From Octopus sinensis (Eukaryota): a stretch of 64,000 nucleotides of DNA. The notes under the pieces were generated by a model. That model had not been told where the DNA came from. It saw only the letters and a list, made by a program, of their open reading frames with translations, and searched no databases. Within the stretch, counting starts at the first letter, position 1, and the number at the start of each line of letters is the position of its first letter. Positions 9,591 through 60,570 of this stretch are shown one piece after another. Location: assembly GCF_006345805.1 (NCBI RefSeq), contig NC_043005.1, positions 70,928,001 to 70,992,000 on the forward strand. The letters are read 5' to 3'. The position numbers and the translations under genes were made by a program.

Positions 9591-10407
9591 ATTTTATTAT
9601 TACCCACAAGTAGCGAACATAGAGGGGACAATACAATCGGGGAACTTAAAATAAGAAAGCGAATGACAAGAAAAGGAAAAAAATAAAAGGAAAAAATGAC
9701 ATATGAAAGAATATTTACAATGAGATGTAAATGCCCACTCGATCCCCGGAATCGAGAGGTTACATTTTCGTCACATATATTTCACAATATTTTCTTTTTC
9801 CTCTTCTTTCTTCTCTCTCTTCTCACAATTCTATACATATTCCATGATAGCTTTCAATTTTCTAAAGTCCATCACTGAGCCCTCAGGCAGCCGCTCTCTC
9901 ACTCGAACACTCGTGTAAAACGTTACACTCTGCAATTTCTTCCGTTGCACATCTCACCTCCACCGTACCAAATTTCTTGCCTCTACTCACGTAAGTTGAT
10001 TTCCCCATTATGTCTCCCAGACATTTTTCGATTTCTGCTATCTCCACTCTTGCCAGTTTCTTCGTATTTTTGTCTTGGGTTCTATATGTCACTGTCTTGT
10101 TTTCTTTGTCCTCTTTTGCTTTCGCGGGGGGGATTAGCTTCACGCTATCACCCTCCCTTTTGAAGAGCTTTTCATATTCTTTGAGTTTACTCTTCTCAAA
10201 GAAAACATCCTTCACGATTATCGACGAATCATTATTTTTTTTTCCCGTGACCCCCGCGTAAGTCGCCATGACTAGAGGGTCAATTCACCTTCTTCAGAAC
10301 GTTTCCACACGTGGAGGCAAACGCCTCGCGCGATAATAATCAATTTACACAGAACAAAGTTTCACTGTCTAGTCACAGATAACAACACGTATAGCTTGGA
10401 GCCACGT
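9591..10407 (-). mobile_element. Short ORF1-only unit with truncated ORF1 (128 aa, 9883-10269)
   Basis: MATYAGV..KKFGTVEVRC N-terminus homologous to the ORF at 11001-12179; conserved 3' tail at 9591-9645; no ORF2. Confidence 0.8.
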
Positions 10408-12313
10408 TGTTTTATTATTACCCACTAGTTGCTACATAGATGGGACAATACAATCGGGAAAATGAATAATGAATTATGAAGTTTGTACAATGTGGTGCAA
10501 TGCCCACTCGATCCCCGAAATCGAGCGGTTACATTTCGTCAATTAATTTTGTTCGTCAACAATATTTTCAAATAAAACATTTTATACATTTTCAACATAC
10601 ATTTCAAAAAGTTTTACAAAGTTCAACATTTCTTTTTTTTTTTTTCAGAATTTAAAGTTCTTTTTATCATTTCCAAATTAAGTTTTCACAATACCTTTTC
10701 TTTTATATATACTCCATTATGTCTACCAAATCTGAGTAAACTTCCATTGTTCGAGGCCACCTTGTAAGTCGGCATTTCATATGTTTTGACACGTTCTCGC
10801 CAGCTGCCTCGATGAACGCCTCGGCGTCGTTCTCGTGGACGAGTGCACCTGTTTCTTTCCATTCGGTGCCCATCCTGACCCACGTATATCCTTTTGTTGC
10901 GCTTATTAAATCTTCCATCTCCTCACAGTGCCTGTGATGGATCAACGTTCCATAGTATTTGAATTTTCTATTCGTACATACGTTTTCTCTAGTTTTTCTC
11001 TTAGGACTTACTTCCTCTTTTTCTCCTCCCTCGGTTTCTCTCTTTCTCTCTTTTGCTTTCTCTTTCTTTTTCCTTCTCTTGTCTTTTTGGCTCTTTGTCT
11101 GCCGTCTCTCTACCCTGTGCCTTAAGTTCCTTTCCTGTTGTTTCTTTTCCTTTTTGTATACCATCTTTTCCTTTCTCTTGGTTCTGTTCCTTCTTTTGTT
11201 CTTTTCCTGCTTTTTCTCTTCCCTTTAATGTACTTTCCTTTTCTTTCTCTTTCTTCTGCCTTGGCTCCTTCTCCACTACTTCTGCACCCTGTGAATTTTG
11301 CTCCTTTTCTACTATCTTCTTCCCTTTGTTTTCATTTTCCTTCAGTGCGCTGTTACTTCCCTTCTCTTGTTGTTTCTCCGTTATTTCCTTTTCCTTGTTT
11401 TCGCTGTTCTTTCCTTCGTGTTCGTTTTCCTTCTCTCCACTTTGTGTCTCTTTTTGCTCCGCTGTGAATTCATACAGCGGACATTCCTTTTTTATGTGCC
11501 CTCTTGAACCGCACAGGTAGCAATTCGGTTTTCTGCCTTCCACTATTACACTAATTGTCTTCTCGTTTTCTATTTCTATTTGGAAGGGAAATCTTTCGAT
11601 GTCTTCCATTGTGGCCATTAGCCATAACTCTACTCCGTATCCCTTCCAATTTACAACGTTCGACTCCTTAATTGACCCTATTTCTACTTCCTCTTTTGCT
11701 GCCCCAATAATGGCTGTTACCAGCATTTCTGTTTTAATATTTGGGGGCACCTTTGGGACTCTTACCCGTACCCCTCGTCTTCCTTTATACGTCGGCCACA
11801 TGGTGAAATTTTCCGCTTTCAGGACAGTGGAAGCCAATGAGGCCGCCACTTCCTTTGTTGCGCATCTCACCTCCACCGTACCATATTTCTTTCCTCTGTC
11901 TACAAAAGTCGCTTTTTTCATGATGTCCCCCAGACATTTCTCTATTTCTTCAATCGTCACTCTCACCAGTTTTCTCGTGTTTCTATCTTGCGTTCTATAC
12001 GTTATCGTCTTGTTAATTTTTTCTTCTATTGTTTCCACAGGCGGGACCAGCTTCACGCTGTCACCCTCCCTTTTGACGAACTTCTCGTATTCCTTCAATT
12101 GTTCTTTTCTAAAGAACACTTCTCTTATTCTAAGAGACTCGTCACTTTTTGTTGTGGCGACCCCCGCGTAAGTCTCCATGACTTGAGGGTCGACACACCT
12201 TCTATAAAAGGTTCAAACACGCAGCGGCAAAACGCCTCGCGCGATTCAATTTTTGACAACTTTTAACCGTCTTTTTTCAATTTTCACATATAAAATAACT
12301 CACAACACACGTA
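10408..12313 (-). mobile_element. ORF1-only (HAL1-like) element; ORF1 12179 to ~10686 with frameshifts
   Basis: 392-aa ORF with TYAGV, KKYGTVEVRC and CYLCGSRGHIKKEC knuckle, continuing in other frames; then U-rich UTR and conserved tail; no ORF2. Confidence 0.85.
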
Positions 12314-15300
12314 TATAGCTTGGAGCCACGTGTTCCCAGATGCGATAACACGTGTTCTGCGTAACTTATCAAGTCTGACAACTTCCGACAGTGTACAAAA
12401 GCGTGCTGGACGGTTTCATCGTCCAACTCGCACCTTGGACACGTCGGTGGCACTGGAATTCCGTGCCGCGATAACTTCTTGCGAACAGGTAGAGCATTCC
12501 TATAGCACTGCCAGGCCAGGGATCTTTGGAAATTATCCAAGTACCCCGTCCTGAAAGTCTTTTTAAACAGGTTGGTAAGCTGGTCTTCGTCAAACCCCAG
12601 AGCCCCTCCTAGGACGTCGTCGTTCTTTGCCTCTACCAGCCTTCTATAAAATACCGAGGTGGTATTTCCGCAGCCGGCCTTGCCCGCCTTGTGGATCAGC
12701 GTGAATGCCTGTCGGCACTCCCTTTGCCATAAAGTCAGTTTCCATCTTTTGATGCGACCGGGTTTAAAATCCGTTAAGGAGGCCAGTCTCGGGAAAAATT
12801 TCCCTGCCAGCGGACTCCACACCTTATCACCCTCCAGGTGGTGCCAGAGATGCTTCAGCCTCAACGCATGTCTGCGCATCATCAACCAAGGCATTCCTAA
12901 CCCACCCTTTAACGGTTCCTGGCAGCAAACGGAGCGCCTCACAAGTGGCTTTCTTCCCTTCCACAAAAAGCGGAAAAGGATTCGCTCCAACTTGTTAAGC
13001 CATGAACCGGGGCAAGGGACAACGGTCAGGCGGTAAGTGATTACAGATGCAATGAACATCTGTACCACCTCCGCCCTTCCTTTCAAGGACAGAGACCTTC
13101 CGGACCAGGTCCGTACTATGGCCTCCACCTTGCTCGTCACCTCACTCCAGTTCCTCTCCGTTTGGGAGTCTGGCCCAAACCAGACTCCTAGCAACTTAAC
13201 AGGGCCATCCGTCCAGTGTCCCACGACGCTGGACGATATCGACTTGCTCCTCCAGGTGCCGAGGCGCAAGCCAACCGACTTGTCCTTGTTAACCTTTGCT
13301 CCTGCCACCGCCTCGTATCCTCTGATAGCCTCTTCCACACAAGGTAGCTGGGCCTCATTGGACACGATGAGGGTGACGTCATCCGCATAAGCAGTAACCG
13401 TCCTCCCACCTCCGATCTCATCCGAGTTGCTTCCCAGCCTCTCCAACTTTCGCAGCAATGGCTCAAGAGCCAACACGTACAAAAGTGGTGACAAGGGGCA
13501 CCCTTGACGAACTGAACATTCAATCGAAAACGGTTCCGTTAGGTAACCGTTTATCTGGACGGTGGACTTGATGCCGCTATACATAGCGGAGATCCACCCG
13601 CGAAATTCAGGGCCCAGTCCAGCCGCTTCGAGGACCGTCGCCAGGTACTCATGGTCTACCCTATCGAACGCTTTACTTTGGTCTAAATGGACCATTACCC
13701 CGCCCTTGCCGGTTAATTTACCCACCCTGTCTAAGGTGTAGCGTATTAGGTGAAGATTGTCCTGGATCGACCTGCCTGGAATTGCACATGTCTGTGCTCT
13801 CCCTACAAGTTTCTCTACGACAACCGTCAACCTTTTTGCCAACACCTTGGCCAAAATCTTTAACTCTACATTAAGTAGGGTTATGGGCCTGTAGTTACTA
13901 ATGTTATCCCCCTTGCTCGGGTCTTTCTGGATTAGCGTCACCACTCCCCGGCTTACAGAGCTGGGAATTCTCCCATTCTGCTGCCAGTTCGTGTAGACGC
14001 CTGCCAATATTCCCCCGAACAAGTCCGGCATACTTTGGTAAAACTCGTAGGGCAGACCATCCAACCCCGGCGCATCCGGCCAGTATCCCCTCTATCTCCG
14101 CGGGAGTGATCGCTTCTTCACAGCACTCCACCTCACGCCCCGAGAGCCGCGGTCCGCCGGCCAGGAAGTCCTTTAAGGTCCTCCCCCGCTCCGGCGTCAC
14201 ACCACCCCCGAACACGGGCGAAATGCTGGTGAAGAAACTTTTGCATCTCCTCCTGTCCATAGATCTTTTGTCCCTGTTCGTCAGTTAAAGATTTGATTGA
14301 GGCTTTGTTGCCTCTCTGACTCTCCACTCGACGGGCCCATCCGGCAACGTTAATACCTTCTCGTTTCCCAGCGCGTAGCTTAGCTCTGACTCTGCAACCT
14401 TCGTGTTTGGAGTTAAGGTGACGGTACAATACCGTCCTTGCCGCCAACACTCCGGATGCAGAGCCAGCTTCCATTGCCTCGTTTAGATTCTTAACTAGAT
14501 CGTCCTCTATCCTAGACCTATCTAACCTTAGCTGATTGCTAAATCTGATGGACTCTGAACGAATGGCTCTTTTGAGGGAGTGCCACCATCTATTGTTAAT
14601 GATGGTGCCACACAATGCCCTCTGTACTAACACCTTAATCCGGGTACGGAAGTCTTCACAATTCAAAATAGCCTTGTTCAGCTTCCAGTACCCGGGTCCC
14701 TGTCTATGACACTTGTCCAATTGCATCCCACACGTCACAAATTTGTGATCCGTGTAAGGCACAATGTGGAACTGTGGACAACTAAACGTGTCCTTATCTC
14801 TTTTCTTAATAAATATCCTATCTAAATACGATCTGCGTGAGCCGTCGTTGTTACTCCACGTCCACTGTGGAACGCTCGGCTCATCCAGTCGGTAACGGTC
14901 TACTAGATCAAAGCTCTCTAGTAGACCCTTGAGGCTAGGGTTCCCCTTCCTATTGGTTGAGCCAACACTGTCGACCCGCGCTTCAAGGACAGTGTTAAAG
15001 TCCCCTACTAGGATTACCGTTTTCGACGTCGCTAAAAAGGGCTCCAGGTTCCGAAAAAAACCCGCCTGTCTACTCTCGTTCGGAGCGTAGACAGCTACCA
15101 ACCTGAAGGACTGTTTACTTACGTGGGTCACATCCAGAACAACCAGCCTGCCTTCTGGGTCCAGAAAGACAGTACTTACCTGCAAGTCCAAGCTCTTCCT
15201 GATAAGGACTGCCACGCCTCTGCCTCTTCCTCGGCTAGGAGAAATAAATTTCTCGAACCCATTTAGAAGAGGCGAGAACGCTTGGGCCCCGTTCATCTTG

Positions 15301-16075
15301 GACTCGGTTGCAATAGCTATGTCTACTCCATGTGTCGTGAGGTCGTGCAGGAAGCAAATTTGCTTCCATTTCGACCCCATTCCACGTACATTTATACAAC
15401 CCAGCTTAGCCATTGTAGGTGAGAGAGAAAAATAAATGAACTCACGGTTGGGAAAGGGAGCATGACAGTTTAAATCTGCCCGCTTCCCCTTCTTCCTCCC
15501 TTGTAGTCGTAGCTGCAGGGCTCTTGACCGGCGTTGCCACCGGGCTCTGGGTGGGTGTGGTTGCCGGGGTTATCACAAGTTTGCCCTCCATTACTTCTTT
15601 AGTCACATCTCTAATCAGTCTGTTCTTTAGATGCTCTTGAAGAACTTCTTCCTTCCACTCGTCTTCCTTTATTTTCGCGAAGCGAGTGGTTGCTTTTATG
15701 TCTGTAGCCTTACTATATAACTTAAATTTTGAAAATTTATAGTATTTATATACTCTTTCGTTTTTTTCATCGAAAGCAATGATCTTATCATTTTTTTTTA
15801 AGGACTTTTTCACATCTTGTTTTATGGGGAGGGGCTTGGCAAACTGTTTCCCAATGAAAACAGTGCCATGGGGGTAGGGCTGGGGGATTTGCTTGGTGTG
15901 TATGTCTGCTGTGCTTGCTGATTTTTTTTGTTTGGGGAGGGGAGTCCGGGGTGTTGTCTTTTTTTCTTTTATGTGTGACTTGAGTGTAGTCCATTTGTTC
16001 GGTACAATCCGTTTCTGTTTCAATACTTGTCTTCGTCTTGTTATTATCCTTTTCTGTCTTCTCCCCTTCAGTGTT

Positions 16076-19000
16076 TATCTCTTTATTACGATTATAGAAA
16101 ATCAATACATAGAAGGGACGAATACAGGACATACATACAAAAACATTTAAGAGATTCGATTAAAAGTTTCGTTTGGATTCGTTATAAAGTAATAGTTTTT
16201 GCATAACTAGTATAACAAACACTTGTAGATGACTTTTGTGGTTTTACTGGAGCTTTTACACCCCGGCAATTGATGAGGCCCTGCAGCTTCCACTTCCTCT
16301 CTCTCCTCCATGGTCAAGCTGGGTTTCTCACACCCACCTTTCTTTCCACTTCCTTCCATCTTTTCTCATACACTCCCCGCGGCAAGGTCCTCCTCTCCAG
16401 TCCCATCTTGCTTCTCAGATGATATCTGAAGTAGGTGAGCAAGCCGGGCCCGTAGATAAAGGACCCTGTCGCGGCTCCTTCCATTCTCGTTCTCCACATG
16501 CATTCCTTTACCACTGCAACCGTGCAGTGAAAACATGCCTCACCTTCCTTCGAGAGTCCAGTTGGCGGTATCATCTTAATCATAGACTCAGCCGACAGCT
16601 GTACTCGTCCCAGATGCGATAACACGTGTTCTGCGTAACTTATCAAGTCGTTCAACTTCCGACAGTGAACAAAAGCGTGCTGAACGGTTTCATCGTCCGA
16701 CCCGCATCTTGGACATGTCGGTGGCACTGGAACTCCGTGCCGCGATAACTTCTCGCGAACAGGTAAAGCATTCCTGTAGCACTGCCAGGCCAGGGATCTT
16801 TGGAAATTATCCAAATACCCCGACCTGAACGTTTTCTTAAACAGATTGGCAAGCTGGTCTTCATCAAACCCCAGAGCCCCTCCTAGGACGTCATCGTTTT
16901 TACCTTCTACCAGCCCTCTATAAAATACCGAGGTGGTATTTCCGCAGCCGGCCTTGCCCGTCCTGTGGATCAGCGTGAGTGCCTGTCGGCACTCCTTTTG
17001 CCATGGAGTTAGATTCCATCTTCTGATGTAACCGGGTTTAAAATTAACTAAGGAGGCCGGTCTCGGGAAAAATCCCTCTGCCAGCGGACTCCACACCTTA
17101 TCACCTTCCAGGTGGTGCCAGAGATGTCTTAGTCTCAACGCATGTCTGCGCATCATCAACCAAGGCATCCCTAACCCACCCTTTAACGGTTCCTGACAGC
17201 AAACGGAGCGCCTCACAAGTGGCTTTCTTCCCTTCCACAAAAAGCGGAAAAGGATTCGCTCCAACTTGTTAAGCCATGAACCGGGGCAAGGGACAACGGT
17301 CAGGCGGTAAGTGATTACAGATGCAATGAACATCTGTACCACCTCCGCCCTTCCTTTCAAGGACAGAGACCTTCCGGACCAGGTCCGTACTATGGCCTCC
17401 ACCTTGCTCGTCACCTCACTCCAGTTCCTCTCCGTTTGGGAGTCTGGCCCAAACCAGACTCCTAGCAACTTAACAGGGCCATCCGTCCAGTGTCCCACGA
17501 CGCTGGACGATATCGACTTGCTCCTCCAGGTGCCGAGGCGCAAGCCAACCGACTTGTCCTTGTTAACCTTTGCTCCTGCCACCGCCTCGTATCCTCTGAT
17601 AGCCTCTTCCACACAAGGTAGCTGGGCCTCATTGGACACGATGAGGGTGACGTCATCCGCATAAGCAGTAACCGTCCTCCCACCTCCGATCTCATCCGAG
17701 TTGCTTCCCAGCCTCTCCAACTTTCGCAGCAATGGCTCAAGAGCCAACACGTACAAAGTGGTGACAAGGGGCACCCTTGACGAACTGAACATTCAATCGA
17801 AAACGGTTCCGTTAGGTAACCGTTTATCTGGACGGTGGACTTGATGCCGCTATACATAGCGGAGATCCACCCGCGAAATTCAGGGCCCAGTCCAGCCGCT
17901 TCGAGGACCGTCGCCAGGTACTCATGGTCTACCCTATCGAACGCTTTACTTTGGTCTAAATGGACCATTACCCCGCCCTTGCCGGTTAATTTACCCACCC
18001 TGTCTAAGGTGTAGCGTATTAGGTGAAGATTGTCCTGGATCGACCTGCCTGGAATTGCACATGTCTGTGCTCTCCCTACAAGTTTCTCTACGACAACCGT
18101 CAACCTTTTTGCCAACACCTTGGCCAAAATCTTTAACTCTACATTAAGTAGGGTTATGGGCCTGTAGTTACTAATGTTATCCCCCTTGCTCGGGTCTTTC
18201 TGGATTAGCGTCACCACTCCCCGGCTTACAGAGCTGGGAATTCTCCCATTCTGCTGCCAGTTCGTGTAGACGCCTGCCAATATTCCCCCGAACAAGTCCG
18301 GCATACTTTGGTAAAACTCGTAGGGCAGACCATCCAACCCCGGCGCATCCGGCCAGTATCCCCTCTATCTCCGCGGGAGTGATCGCTTCTTCACAGCACT
18401 CCACCTCACGCCCCGAGAGCCGCGGTCCGCCGGCCAGGAAGTCCTTTAAGGTCCTCCCCCGCTCCGGCGTCACACCACCCCCGAACACGGGCGAAATGCT
18501 GGTGAAGAAACTTTTGCATCTCCTCCTGTCCATAGATCTTTTGTCCCTGTTCGTCAGTTAAAGATTTGATTGAGGCTTTGTTGCCTCTCTGACTCTCCAC
18601 TCGACGGGCCCATCCGGCAACGTTAATACCTTCTCGTTTCCCAGCGCGTAGCTTAGCTCTGACTCTGCAACCTTCGTGTTTGGAGTTAAGGTGACGGTAC
18701 AATACCGTCCTTGCCGCCAACACTCCGGATGCAGAGCCAGCTTCCATTGCCTCGTTTAGATTCTTAACTAGATCGTCCTCTATCCTAGACCTATCTAACC
18801 TTAGCTGATTGCTAAATCTGATGGACTCTGAACGAATGGCTCTTTTGAGGGAGTGCCACCATCTATTGTTAATGATGGTGCCACACAATGCCCTCTGTAC
18901 TAACACCTTAATCCGGGTACGGAAGTCTTCACAATTCAAAATAGCCTTGTTCAGCTTCCAGTACCCGGGTCCCTGTCTATGACACTTGTCCAATTGCATC

Positions 19001-21354
19001 CCACACGTCACAAATTTGTGATCCGTGTAAGGCACAATGTGGAACTGTGGACAACTAAACGTGTCCTTATCTCTTTTCTTAATAAATATCCTATCTAAAT
19101 ACGATCTGCGTGAGCCGTCGTTGTTACTCCACGTCCACTGTGGAACGCTCGGCTCATCCAGTCGGTAACGGTCTACTAGATCAAAGCTCTCTAGTAGACC
19201 CTTGAGGCTAGGGTTCCCCTTCCTATTGGTTGAGCCAACACTGTCGACCCGCGCTTCAAGGACAGTGTTAAAGTCCCCTACTAGGATTACCGTTTTCGAC
19301 GTCGCTAAAAAGGGCTCCAGGTTCCGAAAAAAACCCGCCTGTCTACTCTCGTTCGGAGCGTAGACAGCTACCAACCTGAAGGACTGTTTACTTACGTGGG
19401 TCACATCCAGAACAACCAGCCTGCCTTCTGGGTCCAGAAAGACAGTACTTACCTGCAAGTCCAAGCTCTTCCTGATAAGGACTGCCACGCCTCTGCCTCT
19501 TCCTCGGCTAGGAGAAATAAATTTCTCGAACCCATTTAGAAGAGGCGAGAACGCTTGGGCCCCGTTCATCTTGGACTCGGTTGCAATAGCTATGTCTACT
19601 CCATGTGTCGTGAGGTCGTGCAGGAAGCAAATTTGCTTCCATTTCGACCCCATTCCACGTACATTTATACAACCCAGCTTAGCCATTGTAGGTGAGAGAG
19701 AAAAATAAATGAACTCACGGTTGGGAAAGGGAGCATGACAGTTTAAATCTGCCCGCTTCCCCTTCTTCCTCCCTTGTAGTCGTAGCTGCAGGGCTCTTGA
19801 CCGGCGTTGCCACCGGGCTCTGGGTGGGTGTGGTTGCCGGGGTTATCACAAGTTTGCCCTCCATTACTTCTTTAGTCACATCTCTAATCAGTCTGTTCTT
19901 TAGATGCTCTTGAAGAACTTCTTCCTTCCACTCGTCTTCCTTTATTTTCGCGAAGCGAGTGGTTGCTTTTATGTCTGTAGCCTTACTATATAACTTAAAT
20001 TTTGAAAATTTATAGTATTTATATACTCTTTCGTTTTTTTCATCGAAAGCAATGATCTTATCATTTTTTTTTAAGGACTTTTTCACATCTTGTTTTATGG
20101 GGAGGGGCTTGGCAAACTGTTTCCCAATGAAAACAGTGCCATGGGGGTAGGGCTGGGGGATTTGCTTGGTGTGTATGTCTGCTGTGCTTGCTGATTTTTT
20201 TTGTTTGGGGAGGGGAGTCCGGGGTGTTGTCTTTTTTTCTTTTATGTGTGACTTGAGTGTAGTCCATTTGTTCGGTACAATCCGTTTCTGTTTCAATACT
20301 TGTCTTCGTCTTGTTATTATCCTTTTCTGTCTTCTCCCCTTCAGTGTTGGGAACACTTTGAGGAGGAGCTTCATTTGTTTTCTTCTTTTTTATGCAGTTC
20401 GAGCGGACGTGACCCTTCTCTCCACACTTAAAACATCTGGGTCTACGTCCCTCCACTGATACTCTCATTGATGTTCCGTCTTCGTTGAATATCCTATCGG
20501 GTAGGTTCTCCAATATTTTGTTTTCCGCCTGCACGAGGAGTTCCAGCGTCTGTCCCTTCCAGCGTACCTCCTCTTTCTTTCTCATCTGCAGAATCGAGAT
20601 TTCCCGCTCAATATTGTGCAGGACCGCCGCTGCTACCCACATTATCTCATACCCTCTCGGTATGTCCTCAACCAGCAGTTTCGCTGTTCGTTTTCCCATG
20701 TACGAGGGTAGCAGCATGATGTCATCGTTTTTCAGGGTCAACGATGATACCTCTCTAGCTACCTCAGCTGAGTCAAAATGTGCCTCAACAGTAGCACTAC
20801 GCGCACCTCGGACGACATGGCGAATTTTGTCCCACACCGGGGACAGGCACTTTTCGACCATTTCATTTCTTACGTCCATGATTTTCTTGTCTTTGTAGCT
20901 ATACACTTCATATATGACTGTTTTCTCCTTTATTTCTTGTACCTTTGCCTGCGGCGGTACAAGCCTGATTTCGCCTCCTTCCACCTTCACCAGGTTCCTA
21001 AATTCGAACTGTTGTTCGATCTTGAACTCAACGTCCATCATGGCACCGCCCACCGCGGCCGAAAAAGACTGTTTTGGTACTTCTGTTTCCTTTATTTCAC
21101 TTGTTCCCATCACGGGAAAATCATCCTTCGACGTCAAGTCGAAATCCATTTCAAAAATTACCTCGAAGGTAATAACAATACAGGTAATAACAATACAGAA
21201 TTTTCTGCCCCGTAGGGCGAAAATTACCGTTATACAACGGGCACTGTTCAATAACAATCAACACAAACAACAATAAGCAAAAATACGAACTCTCTCAACT
21301 AAAGGCAGCTAATTCCTCAGAACGCAGATGAAAAGTAGCTAGAGAATAGAATCG
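16076..21354 (-). mobile_element. Tx1/L1-clade element A2, full length, frameshifted
   Basis: ORF1 21257 to 19715 (CFKCGEKGHVRSNC), ORF2 19686 to 16314 in three frames, 3' UTR ending TAATAAAGA. Confidence 0.95.
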
Positions 21355-33879: not shown

Positions 33880-33917
33880 ATTTTATTACTACCCACAAGG
33901 GGCGAACATAGAGGGGA

Positions 33918-38443: not shown

Positions 38444-38677
38444 GGGCGGCGAGCTGGCAGAAACGTTAACACGCCGGGCGAAATGCTTAGCCGTATTTCG
38501 TCTGCCGTTAAGTGTTCTGGGTTCAAAATCCGCCGAGGTCGACTTTGCCTTTCATCCTTTCGGGGTCGATAAATTAAGTACCAGTTACGCACTGGGGTCG
38601 ATGTAATCGACTTAATCCCTTTGTCTGTCCTTGTTCGTCCCTTCTATGTTTAGCCCCTTGTGGGCAGTAAAGAAATA
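38444..38677 (+). mobile_element. Young full-length SINE family 1 copy with Tx1-type tail
   Basis: A-box-like GGCGAGCTGGCAGAA, B-box-like GGTTCAAAATCC; 17-bp TSD TATATCTAATAGACTCA at 38427-38443 and 38678-38694. Confidence 0.92.
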
Positions 38678-49300: not shown

Positions 49301-51655
49301 ACAAGTGACCATTTTATGATCACTGTAGCTGATCGGGTAAAACTGTGGACACTTAGCTATTTTACTGTCTACTTTTCTAATTAGAATTCTATCTATATAT
49401 GACCTGGAAGATCCGTCGCTGTTTGACCATGTCCACAATGGAGCGTTCGGAAATTCCAGCCTATACGGATCTGCTAGCTCAAAGCGGCTTAGCAGTTCCA
49501 TGAAGCCACTGTTACCTCTCCTATCTGGACACGAGCCAACACAATCTACATCCGCTTTGCAAATTGTGTTAAAGTCTCCTAGCACAACTAATGAATGCGA
49601 AGTACCGAGAAAGTTTTCTAGTTCACGAAAATAATCACTTTGCCCTTTTTTACTGTTGGGTGCGTAAATTGCAACCACTCTGATAACTTTACCATTACTG
49701 AACGTCAAATCCATGACGACCAGCCTACCTTCTGGATCTGCAAAAATTAACTTTTTCTCAGAAACCCGGTTTCTTTTTAATAGGACCAACACCCCTCTCC
49801 CGCCTGTAGGACTGCCAGGAGAGAAAAAACTCTCGTAGCCGTCAAACAGCGGGAGAAGACCTCTTGGCCCCTCTAACCAGGTTTCTGTAGCAACAATAAC
49901 ATCTAAATTACGCGACCTGATATCATGCAGGAAGCGACCTTGCTTCCAGCCTGCTCCCAGGCCGCGCACATTCAAACAACCGACATAAATGTAATCCATT
50001 ACTTACCTTATATCAGTGGTTCGGTTTTTTCGTTTTCTTCCTTGCTTGTCTCTTCTTCTGGGCCTCGTGGGGGAGTCTGACGCAGGCCCTCGAATATATA
50101 TATGGAGATGTTATATCCATTCTGAGCGGGCCTACGTCATGGAAAAATTCGGACTTTATCCGTCCGTAATCCTTCCGGCCTATTCTGTACAAAACATAGT
50201 CGTTTTTCTTCCCTATTTTTTCTACTTTGGCCATCGCTGCCAACACATTTCCTAGTCTATTGTTCGTGGCCTTACCGGCCATAAATGAGTTCAATGACTC
50301 CCTTTTTTTTTTTGGTTTACTTTGGGAGGGGTGGTTTCAGTTTTTCTTTTTTTCCTGGTGATTTTTGACCACCCCTCCTCCTTTTTCGTTTCCTCGCTCT
50401 TTTTTTCCTCTTCCGTTGGTTCCGCTGCCTCTGTCACCTCCACACCTTCAGTCGTCCCTCCTGGGCCGACCAGCGCTGTTTCTGACGACACGGCTTCTTC
50501 TTTTCCACTTGGCTGAGCTGCTTCCTGCGGTTTGGGTTGGGGCTGGCATTCTGCCCTTACATGCCCTTTCTTACCGCAGCCGAAGCACCTCGGCTTTCTG
50601 CCCTCTACGAAGACTGTGACTCTTTCATCTTCGCTTATCTTTAGAGTCTCTGGGATCTCTTCCAGGGTTTGTACTTCTGCTTGTATGGCTATTATTATTT
50701 TTTGCCCTTTCCAGAATTCTTCTTCTTCTACGGTGGCCTGGAGGATGTTTATTTTTTCCTCCAGGCCTACCATAACTGCTGCCACCAGGACTTCGGCATC
50801 CGCTTCTGGCGGAATGTTATTCATTGTGATCTTGGAAGTTCTCTTGCCTTTATACAGGGGTAGGAGAACAATATCCTCCGCTTTTATGGGTTCCATGGAT
50901 AGCTTCTTCGCTACCTCCTCTGACGTGAATCTCACCTCCACTGTGCCGTATTTCTTCCCTCGATTGATATATGTTATTTTATCCATAATCGGCTTTAAGC
51001 AGTTTTCGATCTTTTTCTCCTCTATTTTTTGTATTGCTCTGCTTGTTATACTGAATGTCTTATAGATTATTCTCCTATTCGAAATTTCCTCCTGTATTTG
51101 GGCGTTTGAAGCCACGGTTACTTCCGTGCCCTCTTTTGACACACAGTCTGCATGTTTTCCCAGGTTGTCCACGTTAATTTTTTTAATTTTCTTCCCAGCT
51201 ACTTCAGAAAATTTTCTCGCTGGTGCTGGAATGTCTTTTTCCTTTGGCGACCCCGCCTCTTTTTTCTTTGGCGACCCCGCCTCTTTTTTCTTTGGCGACC
51301 CCGCCTCTTTTTTCTTTGGCGACCCCGCCTCTTTTTTCTTTGGCGACACCGCCTCTTTTTTCTTTGGCGACACCGCCTCTTTTTTCTTTGGCGACACCGC
51401 CGGTGATCCTGCATCACTTGAATTCGAGATGGGGGATTCCATCTCTGATATCTGGCTTTAACAAGCCCTTGGCACAACCAAGATAATGATAGCCCTCGCA
51501 CGAAGGCCGACTTCAACAGTTTTACAACAACACAGAAAGACAGCTAGACACACAGTAGATCACAACGGAGAAAATATACACAAAAAAATATACTAACTCA
51601 CTATACACTATGACGAGTATTCAGTTGGTGAAAGTTCAGTTTTTCAGTGTCTATG
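46360..51655 (-). mobile_element. Tx1 element D2, full length, three frameshifts
   Basis: ORF1 51442 to ~50008; ORF2 49999 to ~46600 (500-aa and 653-aa segments plus a C-terminal piece). Confidence 0.95.
51236..51401 (-). repeat. 7 x 24-bp coding tandem repeat in D2 ORF1
   Basis: TTTGGCGAC recurs at 51243, 51267, 51291, 51315, 51339, 51363, 51387; encodes (V/G)SPKKKEA. Confidence 0.95.
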
Positions 51656-54600
51656 ATTTCTTTATTACCCACAAGGGGCCAACGAAGAATGGGACAATAC
51701 ATCATGATTTGGGGTCATGAGACACAGATGGTATTTACAGAAAAAATGAACTTTTTTTTTTTTTTTTAAATTACAAAAAATCGGATAAATCGAATGATAT
51801 ACAACAACAACACAACATAAAGGTAACACATGAAGCGGGAACACCAGGATTGCCGACCCCACGAGCCCTGCTATTCCCACCGAAACTCGGCAGCCAACCT
51901 ACAGCATGTTTACGTGGCTCCTCTCACTCGCAGCAACCGTGCCACACGCTTCCATATTTTATCGAACTCACACGCAGACAGACACCTCTTCTCCAAATCC
52001 ACCTTTCTTTTTAGGTGGAACCTGAAATAGGTCACCAAGGCGGAGCCAGAGATCACGGTGCCTGCCGTTACCGCTTTCATTCTGGTCTTCCATATACACT
52101 CTTTCGCTACTGCTACTGTACTGAGAAAGCAATGCTTACCTTCACTTGTCAAAAAGCTAGGCGAGTCAATTTTTACAATTGTCTCAGCCGATAGCTGTAC
52201 TCTTCTTCCGTCCGACAACAGGTGTTCGGCATATACCCACACGTCCGAGACTTTCGGACACTGAACAATAGCGTGCGAGACTGTTTCCAGATCCCGCTCG
52301 CATCTTGGGCAGTTCGATGGTCCACTCCAACCATGCCTTGTGAGTAACGGTAAAGCTCCTCTGAAACATTGCCAGGTCAAAGACTTCTGGAAGTTATCCA
52401 ATGTCTTCGGCCCGAACGTCCTTCGGAACAGGCTGTCCAACTGATTTCTATCGAGGCCCAAGGTCCTTCCTAAGGCATCGTCATTTCCGGCCTCTACCAA
52501 CCTGCTATAAAAAGCTGCGGTGGTACCAAAGCCGCCGGCATTGCCCGAGTTGCGGAAGTGGCAGAGTGCCTTATGGCACTCCGAATACCACATGCTCGAT
52601 CTAAGTCTGCGACGAAACCAGGTTTCTCTGCCACCGAAACTGACAAAGCTGGGGAACATCAGCTTCGCAAGCGGGGACCACACCCGTTCACCATCCAGGT
52701 AGAGCCAAAATGCCTTAACCTCAGCGCATCTCTGCGCATCATCAGCCAAGGCATCCCCAAGCCACCCTTTAACGGTTTCTGACAGCAGATAGAACGTCTT
52801 ACAAGAGGAGCACTTCCCTTCCACAAAAAGTGGAAGATCTGTCTCTCCAACTTGCTCAACCACGAATCCGGACAAGGGACGACGGTCAGGCGGTAGGTGA
52901 TGACCGATGCTAAAAACACATTGGCCACCTCCGCCCTCCCTTTCAAGGACAGCCACCGTCCGGACCAAGTCCCGACCGCGTGAGCCACCTTGCCCGACAC
53001 CTCAGACCAGTTCTTTTCTATCTGGAGACCTGAACCAAACCAGATCCCTAGCAGCTTAACCGGGCCCTCCGTCCAGCATCCCACGATGCTATTCGAAGGC
53101 ATCGACTTGCCCCTCCAGGTGCCGAGTTGCAAGCCGACCGATTTTTCCCGGTTAATCTTTGCTCCTGTCACCGTCTCGTAAGCCTTGATGGCATCTCCCA
53201 CATTACGTAGGAGTTCCACCTCGGTCACGATGATGGTGATGTCGTCCGCATACGATGTCACAGATCCTCCACCTCCTGGATTCATCGGGATGGCGCTCAG
53301 CTTTCGCAGCAATGGCTCAAGAGCCATCACATACAAAATCGGGGAGAGCGGACACCCTTGACGAACAGACTGTTTGATGCGGAACGGCCTCGAGAGGAAG
53401 CCATTCACCCGAACGATCGAGTCGATGTTATCGTACAATTGTATGATCCACCTGAGGAAGCCAATGCCCAGACCGAACTGCGCCAGCACGGACACCAGGT
53501 ACCGATGGTTCACCCTATCAAACGCTTTACTCTGGTCTAAATGGACCAATGCCCCACCCTTGCCAGAGTCATTCCCAAACCTCTCTATTGTGTAGCGTAC
53601 TAGGTGAAGATTGTCCTGGATGGTTCTTCCTGGGACCGCACAAGTTTGTGCCTTCCCGATCAGACCACCCGCGACACGCGTCAACCTTTTCGCTAACACC
53701 TTGGCCAAAATCTTCACCTCTGTGTTTAGCAGTGTGATGGGCCGAAAATTGTCTGTGTTATCCCCCTTGCTCGGGTCCTTTCTGATCAGCGTCACCACTC
53801 CCCGACGTACAGATCTTGGAATGAACCCATTCTTCCGCCAGTTCGTGAAAACGCCGGCCAGCACGTTCCCGAACAAGTCTGGCATTCTTTTATATATTTC
53901 GTAAGGTAAACCATCGATCCCCGGCGCCCTGCCTTCACCGCAGTCGGCCAGGACCTCAGCTATCTCCTCAGATCGACGCTTCACAGCTCTCCGCGTCCTG
54001 CCCCGAGAGGCGCGGCAGCCCGGCGAGGATGTCCGTTAGGTCCACCCTCTCCTCCGGTCCGCCGTCGCCCCCAAAGAGCCGAGCGAAGTGCTCCTGAAAC
54101 GTCCGACACATCTCCTCTGGTTCGGTGATCACATCACCTCGCCCATTCGTCACAGACTTAATTGTGGAATCGTTTCCACGTCGAGCCTCCACAACTCGTG
54201 CCCATCCGGCAGCCTTGATACCCTCGCACCCCATTGCGCGAATTCTAGCTCTGACGATACAACCCATATGTTGGGCTTCGAGGTGCTGCTTCAACTCCAG
54301 TCTCTTCAGCCTAACCTGGGCCCCATCGCCAGCTCTCATGGCTTCCTCTAAGGCCTTAACTAGCCCCATCTCTTTCTTACGCCCGCTAGTTGCTAGACCT
54401 ATGCTGTATCTAACGGACTCGTATTTTATGGCTCTTTTGAGGGCGTACCACCATTTGTTGTTAATAATGGAACCGGTTAACGCCCTCTTCACTACTAACT
54501 CGATCCGCTTTCTGTACTCCTCAATAGCCAGGAGGGACTTATTGAGTTTCCAGTAGCCGGATCCCCTACTACCTAACTTATCTAGGTTCAGTTCGCCAGT

Positions 54601-56801
54601 GACCATCCTGTGATCGCTGTAACTGACCGTGTGAAACTGTGGACACTTAACTAATCCTTTATCTATTTTTCTAATAAAAATTCTGTCTATGTAAGACCCG
54701 ATAGACCCGTCGCCACTTAACCACGTCCACTGTGGAGCGTTCGGGAATTCAAGTCTGTGGGGATCTACCAGCTGAAAGTGACTCAGTAGATCCCGGAAGC
54801 CAGCGTTTGGTTTCCTATCTTTCGAGCCAATGCCATCGACGCGCGCGTCGACTATGGCATTAAAGTCCCCTAACATGACTATGGATTTTGACGTGCCAAG
54901 AAACTTCTCCAAGCCTCGATAAAAATCAGTCTGACCCGTATTAGGTGCATACACCGCCACCAGCCTGATTTCTTTACCACAACTGAACGTCAGATCTAAG
55001 ACGACCAGCCTACCTTCTGAATCAGAAAAAATCAACTTTTTCTCTGCGACACTATCTTTTTTAAGCAGAACCAACACCCCACTCCCGCCCACATGCCGTC
55101 CAGGAGAAATAAATTTCTCGTAGCCTTCCATGAGCGGGAGTAGATCTCTTGGCCCTTCGATTCGTGTCTCAGTAGCGACAATTACATTTAAGTTCCGCGC
55201 CCTGATATCGTTTAGAAAACGACCTTGTTTCCAGTTCGCTACCAGGACGCGCACATTTATGCAACCAACGTAAACAGCCATAGTTTGCCTACCTTATTTC
55301 CTCTGGGTCCGGCCGGCGGGGTGGACCCGTCTCTTCTGCCTCAGATGAACGTGGACTCGGCGCGTTGTTGTTCTTTCTTTCTGCATCCTTCAGGGCATCC
55401 TCCCTGCTCATTCTGGGTGTGCCTACGTATTTTCTAAAGTCGTTTGCATACGTGTTGAACCCTTTCAGTCCCATCACGTAGCATCTCCAGCCTCCACCTT
55501 TCGCTTCCATCTCCACCTCCTCGACGTGTTGAGTCTCCACTCTGCGTACCACTTCTCTGTTTGCGGTATTCATCGCCTGTTCTCCCTCTCCGGCTTCTTC
55601 GCCTTCTTTACTTCTCTCTTCTCTTTGCTTATAATTTTCTCCGGGGAGGGGTTGTTGTGCTTTCGTTTTGTCGCAGCAACCTGTGACCACCCCTCCCCTA
55701 CTTCTGTTGCGGCTGTCGTTTCTGTAGCCGCCACTTGAGCACTTGGTTTTGTGGGTACGCTCTTTTCCTTCTCCGCCGGCTTACAGTCCTTTTTGATGTG
55801 GCCCTTCTTGCCACAGGTGAAACACCTGGGCTTCCGGCCCTCCACCATTACTGCCATCCGGCTCTCTCCTATTTCGATGACCTCGCCTATCTCTTCCAAG
55901 GCGACCTGCTCTGCCTGTACAATAATTTGTACTTTCTGTCCATGCCACTTTTTGGCTTCTACCACCGTGGCATCACGCACTTCCATTTGGTCTTCCAGTC
56001 CTGCAGTGACCCCAGCCACTATCAGTTCGGGCTCGATCTCCGGCGGTATGTTGGCAACCGTAATTTTTGAAATACGCCTTCCTCTATAGATAGGTAGAAG
56101 GGTTATTGTGCCTGTTTTTAGGGGCTTCATTGAATGTTCCCTCGCTTCTTCTTCTGTCTTGAACCTAGTTTCCACAGTTCCGTACCTCTTACCCCTGGTT
56201 AAAAATGTGATTTTATCCCAGATGGGTAGTAGGCACGCCTCCACTTCCTTTTCCCACGAAAAGTCTATTTTCCTTTCTATGTTACGGTATGTTTTGAATA
56301 TTACCGTTCTCTTCTCTATCTCTTCGAGAGATTCTTTCATCTGGTTTAGTTTAATCTTGTACCCGTCTCGAGACACTATCTTCTTCGCTTCTTCCACCCT
56401 GGTTAGGTTAATCCTTCTTTCCTTCGGACTAGCTGCCTCGGCGAAGTTTAGCACCTTCCTTGCCATGCTTGGCACATCTATACTCTTTCTGACTCTCCCA
56501 CTTTCCTCCTCGTCCGAGAAAATGTCGGGTATAGCCATTATTCCTTCCAGGTTGGACATCTCTGGACTAAGGACCTGGGTTTGGACTTCCGCTCTGTCCG
56601 CCTTCGGGCTGGCCATTATTGGCCTACCCCTCCTCAGCGTCTTCACTGAAATTGGTCAAATAAATTTGACTAACGAAAAAAACCAACTTACTTTTTTTTT
56701 TTTTTTTTTTTTTTAGTAGCAACAGTGACTTTATATAGGTGCCGACCAGGCGGGACAAAACATTCGCGTCAAAAATGAATAAGTGTCATTATATCACATC
56801 C

Positions 56802-58492
56802 TATTTCTTTATTACCCACTAGGGGCCACGAAGAGGGAACATTACAAAACATGGGGGACATAAAACAATGCGATTAAAATTATGATTAAATGAATGTTAA
56901 AATGAAAAAATGATAACATGAAAGCGATGCTAACGGCCCCCTCCGCCAGCATCACTTACCTTTCCGTTTCCTATCACGATTCCAAAGTGTTTCACCTCAC
57001 CTTTCATTTCTCTCTCATATCTCTCTATCATATCATCCTTCATAAATGCTGATATACAATTTATACGTAGTTCATTGCACTTGCTCATCAAAGAGCCCAT
57101 GAGTTCAAAATCGAATACCGCATAACTTCCGTCCTCATACTCCTGCCATACATTGTCTTCAAAAAGCCTTCTTGCGTTCTCAGTATCCCCCTTCCTCACA
57201 ACACATAAAAAGTAGGACTGGGGCTTTTGTATGTTCTGTGTGTCTGTTTTCGTTTTTCTTGTAGGCGGGGAGTGGGTGGGATTGCTGTTTGCGGGGGCAG
57301 GATGGGTCTCCAAGGGTGTGGGTGGTGTTGGGGTGGGTTGGGGCTTCACACAGTTTTTCCTTTTCTTTCCTTTTCTCTTCTTTCTGCCCTCCTCACACTC
57401 TTTTTGCATCTCCTCCTCCTCTGTCGTTTCCCTTTCCGTCTGCTTCTCTTTAATTTCTTCTTCTTTTGGGGCCTCCTCTTTTGGAGTTTCCTCAACGATT
57501 TCCTTTTCTCTTGGTGGGGGAGGGCAGAAGGCTCTTATGTGGCCCCTCAGGCCACACTTGTAACAACGTGGAGCTCTGCCCTCCACCCACACTCTCATAA
57601 TCACGTCTCCCAATTTAATGCTCTCCGCCAGGTCCGCCAGTACCTCGCTCTCCGCCTGCACGTTCAGCTCTACTGTTACGCCTCTCCAGCCCTCGGTCTT
57701 GACCGAGGCATGGAGAATATCTACTTTCTCCTCGTGGCCGCTGATCACAGCCGCCACAATCCATTCAGCCTCCACGTTTGGTGGCACTCCCTCCACCCTT
57801 ACTCGTGTAATCCTTCTATTCATGTACATAGGTAAAAGTGTTACCTTTTCTGATTTCACCGCCTTCACCGCCATCTTCCTCGCTGCAGTCTCACTTTTAA
57901 AATGTACCACTACAGTACCGTATTTCGATCCTCGAGTCAGAAAAATGATTTCCTCCTCCGATTTTCTCAGGGCCTCCTCTATCCATTCCATGTTTACGAT
58001 CTCTATTTTCTTTCTTTCGTTCAGGAACACCCTGTAAATTATGGTCCTCTTATTGTACCATTCCTTTCTCTTTGGTGGTGGTTCCAGTTCCACCTCGCCG
58101 CTGTCCTTCCTCATATACCTCTGGAAACCTGGCAATTTTTCTAGGTTTATTTCTTTTTCCTGTTCCGTCTTCTTTTTTGCAACTCCTGCGTACGTTTTCC
58201 TGTTTTTTGTCTCCACATTATTTACATCACCGATTTGCTCGTCTTCAGAGTTTGATGTCTCCGACAAGCTCTCAAATATCCATTCTTCCTCCGACTCCTC
58301 CACTAGGGAGTGGTCATCCATCTCCTCCCGCCTGACAGGCCGAAAACGGCCGTCAAAACAGAAAAAGTGTAACGCGCAGAACCAGTGGAACGCGAAACCG
58401 CTTTAACGCCGTTCAAAATTTCCACAACAACAACAATTCTTTTTGATCTTTTTTTACCGAACTTCACGCGCGTAAAAATAACACGACCGAAC
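56802..58492 (-). mobile_element. ORF1-only (HAL1-like) element with intact ORF
   Basis: 16-bp TSD TCATTATATCACATCC at 56786-56801 and 58493-58508; conserved tail at 56802-56850. Confidence 0.92.
56930..58321 (-). CDS. Tx1-type ORF1 protein (463 aa) of the ORF1-only element
   Basis: Uninterrupted ORF: TYAGVA, SKYGTVVVHF, LLPMYMNRR, VEGRAPRCYKCGLRGHIRAFC, charged linker, C-terminal domain. Confidence 0.9.
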   Translation of the reverse strand: MDDHSLVEESEEEWIFESLSETSNSEDEQIGDVNNVETKNRKTYAGVAKKKTEQEKEINLEKLPGFQRYMRKDSGEVELEPPPKRKEWYNKRTIIYRVFLNERKKIEIVNMEWIEEALRKSEEEIIFLTRGSKYGTVVVHFKSETAARKMAVKAVKSEKVTLLPMYMNRRITRVRVEGVPPNVEAEWIVAAVISGHEEKVDILHASVKTEGWRGVTVELNVQAESEVLADLAESIKLGDVIMRVWVEGRAPRCYKCGLRGHIRAFCPPPPREKEIVEETPKEEAPKEEEIKEKQTERETTEEEEMQKECEEGRKKRKGKKRKNCVKPQPTPTPPTPLETHPAPANSNPTHSPPTRKTKTDTQNIQKPQSYFLCVVRKGDTENARRLFEDNVWQEYEDGSYAVFDFELMGSLMSKCNELRINCISAFMKDDMIERYEREMKGEVKHFGIVIGNGKVSDAGGGGR

Positions 58493-58514
58493 TCATTATA
58501 TCACATCCATATAT

Positions 58515-59845: not shown

Positions 59846-60130
59846 TTACATAGAGATACAGATGCCTTGTAAGTAAATTTGGTAAATGGAAACTGTGTGG
59901 AAATTTGTCCTATATTTGTGTGTATGTTTCTTTGTGTTTGTCTCTCACTACCACTTGTCTGGTATTGGTTTGTTTATGTCTTCATAACTTAGAGGCTCAG
60001 CTAAAGAGGATACTGGGATAAGGATAAAATTTTTAAAAACGGAGTACTAGAGTAGCTCAGTCTGACTAAAACCCTTCAAGGCAGTGCTCTATTATGGCCA
60101 CTTTCCAAACACTGAAACAATCAATGATTT
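59846..60130 (+). mobile_element. 5'-truncated, degraded SINE family 2 copy
   Basis: GTAAATGGAAACTG..TTGGTTTGTTTATGTC..GGCAGTGCTC..ACTGAAACAA. Confidence 0.65.
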
Positions 60131-60169
60131 ATAATATAAAAGACAAACTCTTTTCATTTACATTCTTAT

Positions 60170-60570
60170 ATTCTTTTCTACTCTCGGCACAAGGTACGAA
60201 ATTTTGGGTGAAGGGGCCAGTCGATTAGATTGACTCCAGTATGCAACTGGTACTTGATTTATCGGCCCTGAAAGGATAAAAGGCGAAGTCGACCTTGGCA
60301 GAATTTGAACTCAGAATGCAAAGACAGATGAAATACCTATTTCTTTACTAACCACAAGGGGCTAAACACAGAGAGGATAAACAAGGACAGACTAATGGAT
60401 TAAATCAATTATATCGACCCCAGTGCATAACTGGTACTTATTTAATTGACCTCAAAAGGATGAAAGGCAAAGTCGACCTCGGAGGAATTTGAACTGAGAA
60501 CGTAGCGGCAGATGAAAAACTGCTAAGCATTTCGCCTGGCATGCTAACATTTCCGCCAGCTCACCACCTT
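60170..60570 (-). mobile_element. Two abutting SINE family 1 copies (60170-60337 with alternative tail; 60338-60570 with Tx1-type tail)
   Basis: Both carry the reverse-complement body ..GAAAGGATGAAAGGCAAAGTCGACCT..; the second begins TATTTCTTTACTAACCACAAGGGGCTAAACACAGAG. Confidence 0.85.

Follow-up and report, generated by a model that had tools for sequence, protein, structure and literature searches.

A 46-nucleotide 3' tail shared by L1-superfamily LINEs, ORF1-only elements and a SINE, and head-to-tail stacking of these elements, in a 64-kb stretch of Octopus sinensis DNA

Recognition of template RNA by the reverse transcriptase (RT) of long interspersed elements (LINEs) may be stringent or relaxed, and short interspersed elements (SINEs) with L1-clade tails are rare, accounting for 3 of 58 pairs (PMC3747384). 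Stringent SINE/LINE pairs include UnaL2/UnaSINE1 of eel and partnerships of the CR1, L2 and RTE groups; the few L1-clade pairs include L1-1_CR/SINEX-3_CR of Chlamydomonas and those of a maize/sorghum L1 lineage. LINE derivatives with only the first open reading frame (ORF1) are known as HAL1 (L1), HeT-A (Jockey clade, with TART) and Ag-Sponge (CR1) (PMC5786205). SINEs make up ~12% of the Octopus vulgaris genome and ~40% of octopus transposon content (PMC13282606, PMC8967140), and L1-Tx1 is the only L1-type class among the recently active LINEs of O. vulgaris, with a mean insertion size of ~5.4 kb (PMC13282606); no paper naming the LINE that moves octopus SINEs was found in the literature searched. 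Here, we report on 64,000 nucleotides of Octopus sinensis DNA (GCF_006345805.1, contig NC_043005.1, positions 70,928,001 to 70,992,000, forward strand; hereafter the window), in which autonomous-type LINEs, ORF1-only elements and a SINE end in one ~46-nt tail. An earlier inspection of the letters by a model (the sequence-only reading) had proposed that these three classes share one LINE-type tail, and the tail alignment bears this out. The tail-sharing system is real and well supported, and it belongs to known kinds, namely a stringent SINE/LINE pair together with HAL1/HeT-A-like elements; the families may already be catalogued in Repbase/Dfam.

Window self-comparison and tblastn with the window's own ORFs delimited 12 L1-superfamily LINE units, all on the minus strand between 9.0 and 58.5 kb (Table 1). 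Read 5' to 3' on that strand, they are E (with O4 inside), D2, D1, C (with SINE1 and O3 inside), B2 and B1, followed 3' of B1 by ~2 kb of the gag region of a long terminal repeat (LTR) retrotransposon, A2, A1 (with O2/O1 inside) and the pol of the same LTR element. Pfam places Exo_endo_phos, RVT_1 and zf-RVT domains in ORF2, whose best PDB match is human L1 ORF2p (E = 9e-40), with R2 far behind. In ORF1, Pfam recognises a CCHC knuckle, and the AlphaFold model of the ORF1 core matches tandem RRMs. The best named protein matches are from Argonauta hians (59%) and a cuttlefish (49%). The LINEs belong to the L1 superfamily and are probably Tx1-type. As in the Tx1 clade (Tx1L of Xenopus, Keno, Kibi, Koshi, Tx1-Mar), ORF2 runs from APE through RT to a C-terminal zinc motif, ORF1 combines RRMs with a CCHC knuckle, target-site duplications (TSDs) of 16 to 18 bp occur and other transposons serve as insertion sites; tandem insertions of the Tx1-mobilised SINEU-3 that sandwich a 16-bp TSD (PMC4494074) have their parallel here in D1. 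Unlike the Tx1 clade, these elements lack a single target sequence: nothing is common to the insertion sites of O1/O2, O3, O4, SINE1, the A cluster and L008, a relative in another assembly. Their positional preference is for the termini of their own relatives. In crocodilian Tx1-Mar/SINEU, the link is a shared target and SINEU ends in poly(A), whereas here the link is a shared tail.

Two tail motifs, the halves of the one described in the sequence-only reading, were counted in the window: ACATAGAGGGGAC (≤2 mismatches) has 10 matches against 1.4 expected, and TACCCACWAGGGGC has 13 against 0.7, with no shuffle as high in either case. Every good match forms the last ~46 nt of a retroelement, on the minus strand except in SINE1 (plus strand), and the tail is common to six autonomous-type copies (B1, B2, C, D1, D2 and E), O1 to O4 and two SINE copies. 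The motif was thus found at each coordinate listed in the sequence-only reading, always as an element's 3' end, and B1, described there as partial, indeed has only the second half. One listed item changes its identity: 33880, counted earlier as a separate autonomous copy, is the end of C's own tail, and the insertion of O3 into that tail explains the tail-only piece at 33880-33917. Elsewhere, the only matches have 2 mismatches and fall in coding sequence, at 6069 (in an LTR-retrotransposon RT) and at 14085 and 18358 (in A copies); the match at 16107 is the divergent family A tail.

Written as RNA, the tail consists of UUGUAUUGUCCCCUCUAUGUU, a GCCC-CUUGU-GGGU hairpin and (A/G)UAAUAAA(A/G)AAU, and no copy ends in a long poly(A). 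The 46-nt tails are 65 to 98% identical across all classes, those of SINE1 and SINE2 being 72 to 80% identical to LINE tails, and the adjacent 3' untranslated region (UTR) is not alignable; a SINE BLAST query matches the LINE tails at 33880, 46360 and 51656. Among seven aligned lineages, mean pairwise identity is 0.56 to 0.75 in the last 20 to 40 columns versus 0.07 to 0.44 upstream in the 3' UTR. These alignments indicate selective conservation of the tail against the background of the remaining 3' UTR. Stringent SINE/LINE pairs likewise have a SINE with the last ~46 nt of the LINE, a small conserved stem-loop with compensatory changes and a LINE without long poly(A). Unlike the known stringent pairs, the partner here is of the L1 superfamily, the end is AAUAAA(A/G)AAU with no terminal microsatellite, and tail dependence is putative. 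Family A has a different tail, with GTCCCTTCTATGT, an AU-rich hairpin (GAUU...AAUC) at the same position and then GTAATAAAGA, and it lacks GCCCCUUGUGGG; it is probably a separate specificity group.

In O1 to O4, tblastn detects ORF1 homology and no trace of endonuclease (EN) or RT. The intact ORF1s of O2 and O4 keep all 30 invariant columns of the autonomous ORF1s at only 30 to 38% protein identity to any of these, with synonymous divergence (dS) saturated; Pfam recognises a CCHC knuckle in O2, in O4 the invariant columns include the cysteines and histidine of the knuckle, and the structural model of the O4 ORF1 predicts tandem RRMs. The earlier statement that, apart from the tail, the elements are unrelated or highly diverged calls for a qualification, in that the ORF1 proteins are homologous. 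That the ORF1-only units are short elements with TSDs of their own was confirmed. O4 is flanked by GGATGTGATATAATGA (16/16; 56786-56801 and 58493-58508), O3 by TCCC(C)TCTATGTTCGCCC within C's tail (17/18; 33900-33917 and 35692-35708), and the O2-O1 pair by a 21-nt TSD, CACGTGTTATCGC(A/T)TCTGGGA, within A1's RT (20/21; 12334-12354 and 9570-9590). The sequence ACGTGGCTCCAAGCTATA (12314-12331) precedes O2 and also begins O1.

There is no nucleotide similarity between the 5' regions of the O elements and any autonomous 5' UTR, so none of them is a plain bipartite deletion product of a resident family. Of their two ends, the 3' tail is the shared one, whereas a true bipartite derivative, with 5' UTR, ORF1, half of the RT and tail, occurs at an O. 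sinensis locus described below. Like HAL1, HeT-A and Ag-Sponge, the O elements have an ORF1p homolog, no ORF2, their own TSDs and a 3' end shared with autonomous relatives; unlike HAL1, they are linked to those relatives by a specific tail instead of poly(A), with subtypes that track particular autonomous lineages, and unlike HeT-A they are not telomeric. The O4 ORF1 protein gave nothing by exact-protein look-up or by homology search, and a profile of six ORF1s had one match, O. sinensis LOC115215450, which is 89% identical to D1's ORF1. As a separate observation, the ORF1 of D1, C and O4 continues past the zinc knuckle through a low-complexity linker into an extra C-terminal domain of ~70 to 100 aa, for which the model gives a small alpha/beta fold (predicted local distance difference test, pLDDT, ~60). 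It lies at 44730-45100 in D1, 56930-57230 in O4, 39629-39900 in C and 50052-50387 in D2, where it is downstream of a premature stop.

SINE1 (~235 bp) is likewise an insertion with its own TSD, as had been claimed for the SINE class: ATATCTAATAGACTCA, a perfect 16-bp repeat (16/16), stands at 38428-38443 and 38679-38694, and the paralogous D2 has the matching, uninterrupted empty site. Its head is probably tRNA-derived, showing by eye a B-box-like GGTTCAAAATCC and a tRNA-like 5' part; ARAGORN and Rfam made no call in the window. SINE2 and a 5'-truncated neighbouring SINE (SINE3) are enclosed by one A-rich TSD (18/22; 60569-60590 and 60150-60171). Five further SINE copies (190-1400, plus strand; 60172-60337, minus strand) share the tRNA-like head and body of SINE1 and have another tail. 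This second tail type, ...AAATTGCTGGCCTTGTGCCAAAGTTTGAAAC, is clear in four copies, that at 715-887 ending differently. Its better-preserved copies have a GGC-CUUGU-GCC hairpin with the same loop, and no LINE with that tail occurs in the window.

Non-autonomous and autonomous tails match by subtype. O1 and O2 have tails of the C/D2 type (...CTCTATGTTCGC...AATAAAAT), that of O1 being 93% identical to D2, and O3 and O4 have tails of the E/B2 type (...CTCTTCGTGGCC...AATAAAGAAAT), 87% identical to E; on this sequence evidence, the subtypes of the partners correspond. A parallel change is seen between species. The Argonauta hians LINE relative (59% protein identity) ends in ...CTGTGTCGGCCCTTGTGGCTAATAAAGAAATC, and at least five Argonauta SINE copies in the same 22 kb share its variant, GGCCCTTGTGGCTA, against GCCCCTTGTGGGTA in all Octopus copies; the Argonauta-specific form is GGCCC...GGCTA and the Octopus form GCCCC...GGGTA. 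A metagenome-derived relative with 60% protein identity (L003) ends in ...GGGCCCTTGTGGCCAATAAAAGAAATC(ATT)n. Among the other external contigs, L002, L004, L007 and L009 end before the LINE 3' end, and the tail of L010 is degenerate.

From these variants, a 4-bp stem is predicted to close the CUUGU pentaloop, and a compensatory C·G to G·C change occurs in six sequences of the 18-tail set. The set was enlarged by four tail kinds, with the stems GGC-CUUGU-GCC (second SINE type), GGCC-CUUGU-GGCC (L003), GGC-CAUGU-GCC (L005) and AAGGC-CUCGU-GCCUU (L008). In the enlarged set, compensatory changes affect three of the four stem pairs, and 87.5% of cells are paired versus 66% in shuffles, none of 500 shuffles reaching the observed pairing or covariation score. 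When the partner columns were slid, pairing fell to 14 to 47%, and RNAalifold independently found the same helix. Two additional pairings were discarded: an extended helix, in which the 5' box would pair with the AAUAAAGAA end, is seen in certain single folds and is missing from the consensus, and a long-range CCCACA/UGUGGG pairing in D-type tails is not kept in E, the O elements or the SINE.

Beyond the sequence-only reading, these elements stack head-to-tail, in the window and in O. sinensis. The 5' termini of B1, B2, C, D1, D2 and E are all related, (C)AAC(C)TGAAT..., and every tail runs directly up to the terminus of the following element, so that the repeat seen around an autonomous copy is its own 5' end set against its neighbour's and mostly no TSD (the two flanks of B2 are only ~70% alike). 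The earlier claim of 16- to 21-bp TSDs in all three classes consequently stands for the ORF1-only elements and the SINE, and mostly falls for the autonomous copies, D1 being the one convincing case. In D1, the 18-nt CAACTGAATACTCGTCAT at 46342-46359 matches AACCGAATACTCGTCAT at 41072-41088 (17 nt; window coordinates 41071-41088) in 17 of 18 positions. We regard this repeat as a probable genuine TSD that originated in the 5' end of C, since D1's own homolog of the 18-mer is internal and diverged and the 18-mer matches the 5' end of C. L008, a solitary relative with 43% protein identity, has a perfect 16-bp TSD, which marks this length class as typical of the lineage. A 28-nt "spacer" between E and D2 was rejected as a separate sequence; both the internal 5' UTR of D1 and the L005 5' end have homology to it, so that it counts as D2's own 5' end. 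The D-type 5' ends (51628-51655 and 46260-46300) contain repeated ACTGAA units (ACACTGAAAAACTGAACTTTCACCAACTGAAT), and their start, ACTGAAAA, is shared with the distant relative L005.

Of 11 insertion points, nine are no more than ~21 nt away from the terminus of a resident element, although this zone amounts to only ~1.6% of a 5.3-kb element, and a single TSD encloses each of three pairs (A2-A1, SINE2-SINE3 and O2-O1). For full-length A2 and 5'-truncated A1, it is the 6-bp CTATCT at 21355-21360 and 9017-9022. In A2-A1 and SINE2-SINE3, the upstream member is complete and the downstream one 5'-truncated, with one TSD outside and none between, which suggests that both pairs arose by RT template switching onto the 3' end of a second RNA; O2-O1 is ambiguous in this respect. 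Known template-switch chimeras include U6/L1 of mammals, and the RT of R2 jumps between templates end to end. U6/L1-type chimeras are likewise head-to-tail retrocopies with one TSD around both parts, but the junctions here run from tail to conserved 5' terminus instead of poly(A) to poly(A), and the array has an age gradient. Nucleotide identity is 92.6% between D1 and D2, 95% between C and D2 and 87% between B2 and E, and stops in the ORF2 alignment number 74 in B2, 28 in B1, 27 in C, 8 in D1, 2 in E and 0 in D2, the younger copies standing upstream. This gradient rejects a single template jump as the origin of the six-element array. Together with D1's sandwiched TSD and the site of O4, 14 nt into E's 5' UTR, it suggests repeated insertion at resident 5' ends.

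Junctions of the same type occur elsewhere. An O. sinensis locus (L011; CM016867.1, 76.60-76.62 Mb) has, at 4544-21353, a full-length D1-like LINE followed by at least four head-to-tail units that are 99.3 to 99.7% identical. Each unit is a 3.57-kb internally deleted derivative (5' UTR, ORF1, C-terminal RT half and tail), and at every junction the tail is joined directly to the same 5' start. The window's D1 is 94% identical over 5.2 kb to the copy there, and one unit's ORF1 is annotated as the gene LOC115215450. The 5'-most 60 to 100 nt differ between the window's D1 and this O. sinensis counterpart. A relative with 44% protein identity (L005/L006; ENA ERZ25071366, contig ctg14421c) is tandem head-to-tail with a period of ~6.48 kb. 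Its junctions are identical, with the tail ...GAATAAATTG followed directly by the 5' start TCAGTATACTGAAAAG; the final "c" of the contig name may mean that the assembler called the contig circular. The A1/A2 pair and L011 indicate that DNA-level amplification contributes to the arrays, probably following the initial joining, and for that first step template switching and terminus homing both fit. No convincing common endonuclease target motif was found, CANNTG lying at the nick in O1, O2 and D1 only. Self-stacking LINEs are known from Zepp of Chlorella and from HeT-A/TART arrays; to our knowledge, self-stacking has not been described for L1/Tx1 elements.

The conserved tail, the private TSDs, the subtype match, the joint change between Octopus and Argonauta and the stem covariation fit stringent 3'-end recognition. 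We give a probability of roughly 0.7 to the reading that an L1-superfamily (probably Tx1-type) ORF2p recognises the ~46-nt 3' module and that the ORF1-only elements and the SINE are copied in trans. The ORF2 protein, with its endonuclease and RT, would recognise the module on the RNA being copied, which is what stringent recognition means; the ORF1-only elements (1.7 to 1.9 kb) and the ~235-bp SINE, as carriers of the same module, would be copied in trans by the same enzyme; the ORF1-only elements may contribute ORF1p; and new copies would land at, or join onto, resident termini to give same-strand head-to-tail arrays. The proposal in the sequence-only reading of a lineage that recognises a specific tail exploited by non-autonomous elements is in this way supported by tail conservation, TSDs, subtype pairing, co-variation and hairpin, from which we infer the binding itself. 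Several points weigh on the other side. The case for a tail requirement is comparative, and the counts cover the window and external loci. The ORF1-only sample is four copies from one window, the protein and profile searches found no such element beyond it, and the sole ORF1 profile match sits in a deletion derivative. Since family A moves with a tail of another kind, recognition cannot be the same throughout the group, and the AAUAAA within the tail means that part of its conservation in RNA polymerase II (Pol II) elements could reflect polyadenylation. The helix has only 4 bp, single-sequence folding energies are no better than those of shuffles (z = -0.2 to -2.3), and the covariation test is inflated because the distant hairpin examples (L005, L008 and other SINE tails) were chosen by eye.

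The AAUAAA near the tail end, the mobility of family A and the weak single-sequence folds would also suit a tail that is inherited or recombined and plays no part in template recognition, for example as a polyadenylation or termination module only, with an RT as relaxed as that of mammalian L1. We consider this unlikely, because a SINE, presumably of Pol III type and so without use for a polyadenylation signal, keeps all 46 nt including the hairpin upstream of AAUAAA, SINE and LINE tails change together between Octopus and Argonauta, the stem has compensatory changes and no copy ends in a long poly(A). Could the array and its tails instead be local segmental or tandem DNA duplications of one ancestor, with tail sharing as trivial paralogy? 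DNA-level amplification does occur, as A1/A2 (98.6% identical over 3.7 kb, 12334-16075 versus 16608-20348) and the O. sinensis units at 99.3 to 99.7% attest. The A1/A2 pair aside, the families are 5 to 28% apart in nucleotide sequence with a nonsynonymous to synonymous ratio (dN/dS) of 0.2 to 0.3, and so diverged under selection as active lineages rather than as local duplicates; their ORF1 modules differ by 37 to 70%, the sites at which the ORF1-only units and the SINE sit are unrelated and marked by private TSDs, and Argonauta and unrelated contigs also have this tail. In-situ duplication was rejected on dN/dS and the private TSDs, and we hold this explanation to be very improbable.

Classical Tx1 elements are target-specific, tandem TSD-sandwiching insertions are known (PMC4494074) and the tails here abut the next element's 5' end, all of which would be expected if the tail were a repeated genomic target of site-specific elements and no part of the elements. 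This idea is scarcely credible and was rejected, given that the TSDs of O4, SINE1, the O2-O1 pair and L008 lie outside the tail, that SINE1 brings its tail into C's ORF2 where the empty site in D2 has none, and that TSD-defined sites have no common sequence. Same-strand transposon clusters are known in animals, and with all 12 LINE units on one strand within 49 kb, the arrays might be ordinary insertions kept in a same-strand graveyard, such as a uni-strand PIWI-interacting RNA (piRNA) cluster, with no terminus preference. The concentration of 9 of 11 insertion points near resident termini, the three pairs with a single TSD and the recurrence of the junction type in O. sinensis and in another assembly make this quite unlikely. 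Stringent recognition remains the preferred reading. A bolder extension of it, possible though doubtful, would make the CUUGU hairpin the recognition element of an octopod L1/Tx1-type RT whose LINE group drove much of the octopus-specific SINE expansion; through its affinity for the tail, this RT would jump or home to resident copies and so build the LINE/ORF1-only/SINE arrays of the window, of O. sinensis and of another assembly; a hairpin with this type of loop also occurs in the second SINE tail and in LINE relatives that are only 43 to 44% identical.

If the preferred reading is right, octopus SINEs have a candidate LINE driver in an L1/Tx1-type family whose 46-nt tail and 4-bp/CUUGU hairpin are defined, and the question whether L1 had specific 3'-end recognition ancestrally can be approached through a stringent lineage of the L1 superfamily. 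Autonomous, ORF1-only and SINE tiers with one tail and matched subtypes would let competition for one enzyme be followed as a natural experiment. Repeat annotation has to reckon with the stacking, an array unit being annotated as a gene in O. sinensis. Two leads follow: the arrays that stack on themselves, and the possibility that octopus SINEs have a common handle in the CUUGU hairpin.

Table 1. Retroelements of the window and their coordinates (position 1 is the first nucleotide of the window)
Feature	Coordinates	Strand	Details
D2, autonomous LINE, most intact	46360-51655	-	tail 46360-46405; 5' end abuts E's tail
D2 ORFs	ORF1 50291-51442; ORF2 in two frames, 48497-49999 (APE) and 46704-48665 (RT and zf-RVT)	-	
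D1, autonomous-type LINE	41089-46341	-	ORF1 44730-46079 (449 aa); tail 41089-41134
C, degraded autonomous LINE	35692-41088	-	tail split by O3; last 20 nt of tail at 33880-33899
Displaced end of C's tail (33880-33899) and 3' copy of O3's TSD (33900-33917)	33880-33917	-	
E, autonomous LINE	51656-56785	-	ORF1 55570-56646, EN 53968-55281, RT 51910-53984; tail 51656-51701
E, first ~30 nt	58509-~58530	-	separated from the rest of E by O4
B2, heavily degraded autonomous LINE	28712-33879	-	tail 28712-28757
B1, degraded autonomous LINE	23367-28711	-	tail 23367-23412, hairpin half of motif only
O4, ORF1-only, 1.69 kb	56802-58492	-	intact 463-aa ORF1 56930-58321; E-type tail 56802-56847
O3, ORF1-only, degenerate ORF1	33918-35691	-	inside C's tail; own tail 33918-33963; ORF1 homology 34887-35438
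O2, ORF1-only, intact 392-aa ORF1 (11001-12179)	10408-12313	-	tail 10408-10453
O1, shortened ORF1-only, first 112 ORF1 codons only	9591-10407	-	tail 9591-9636
SINE1	38444-38678	+	tRNA-like head, conserved body, 46-nt LINE-type tail 38633-38678; inserted in C's ORF2
SINE2	60338-60568	-	tail 60338-60383; head-to-tail on 5'-truncated SINE with different tail (60172-60337)
Family A cluster	9023-21354	-	A2 full-length 16076-21354; A1 5'-truncated 12334-16075, continuing at 9023-9590 past O2/O1

The ORF2 of D2 has a single frame break, at a G-run 1 nt shorter than that of D1 (GGG versus GGGG). Frame breaks in the short EN-RT linker occur in D2 (~48600-48665), E (~53985-54000), A1 (~14064-14133) and A2 (~18337-18406), that of family A likewise at a G-run. 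They could be homopolymer assembly errors, in which case the ORF2s of D2 and A1 would be intact. The continuation of A1 past O2/O1 is only 89.7% identical to A2 (9207-9590 versus 16244-16628), and this mixed identity suggests gene conversion or a recombinant source.

The LTR-type retrotransposon on the minus strand (21361-23300 and 8850-9016) has gag zinc knuckles, a protease and the start of an RT and is split by the family A cluster; joining both flanks of the cluster restores its pol frame, CHYLLPTPEDMF...FSKLDLSDAYLQI. A related RT fragment lies in the opposite orientation (plus strand) at 5983-6495. A 336-aa ORF on the minus strand (62917-63927), with no Pfam match, has a transposon-like look (...FLDVSLDL...YRKPNDRLSYINVGSCHPP...).

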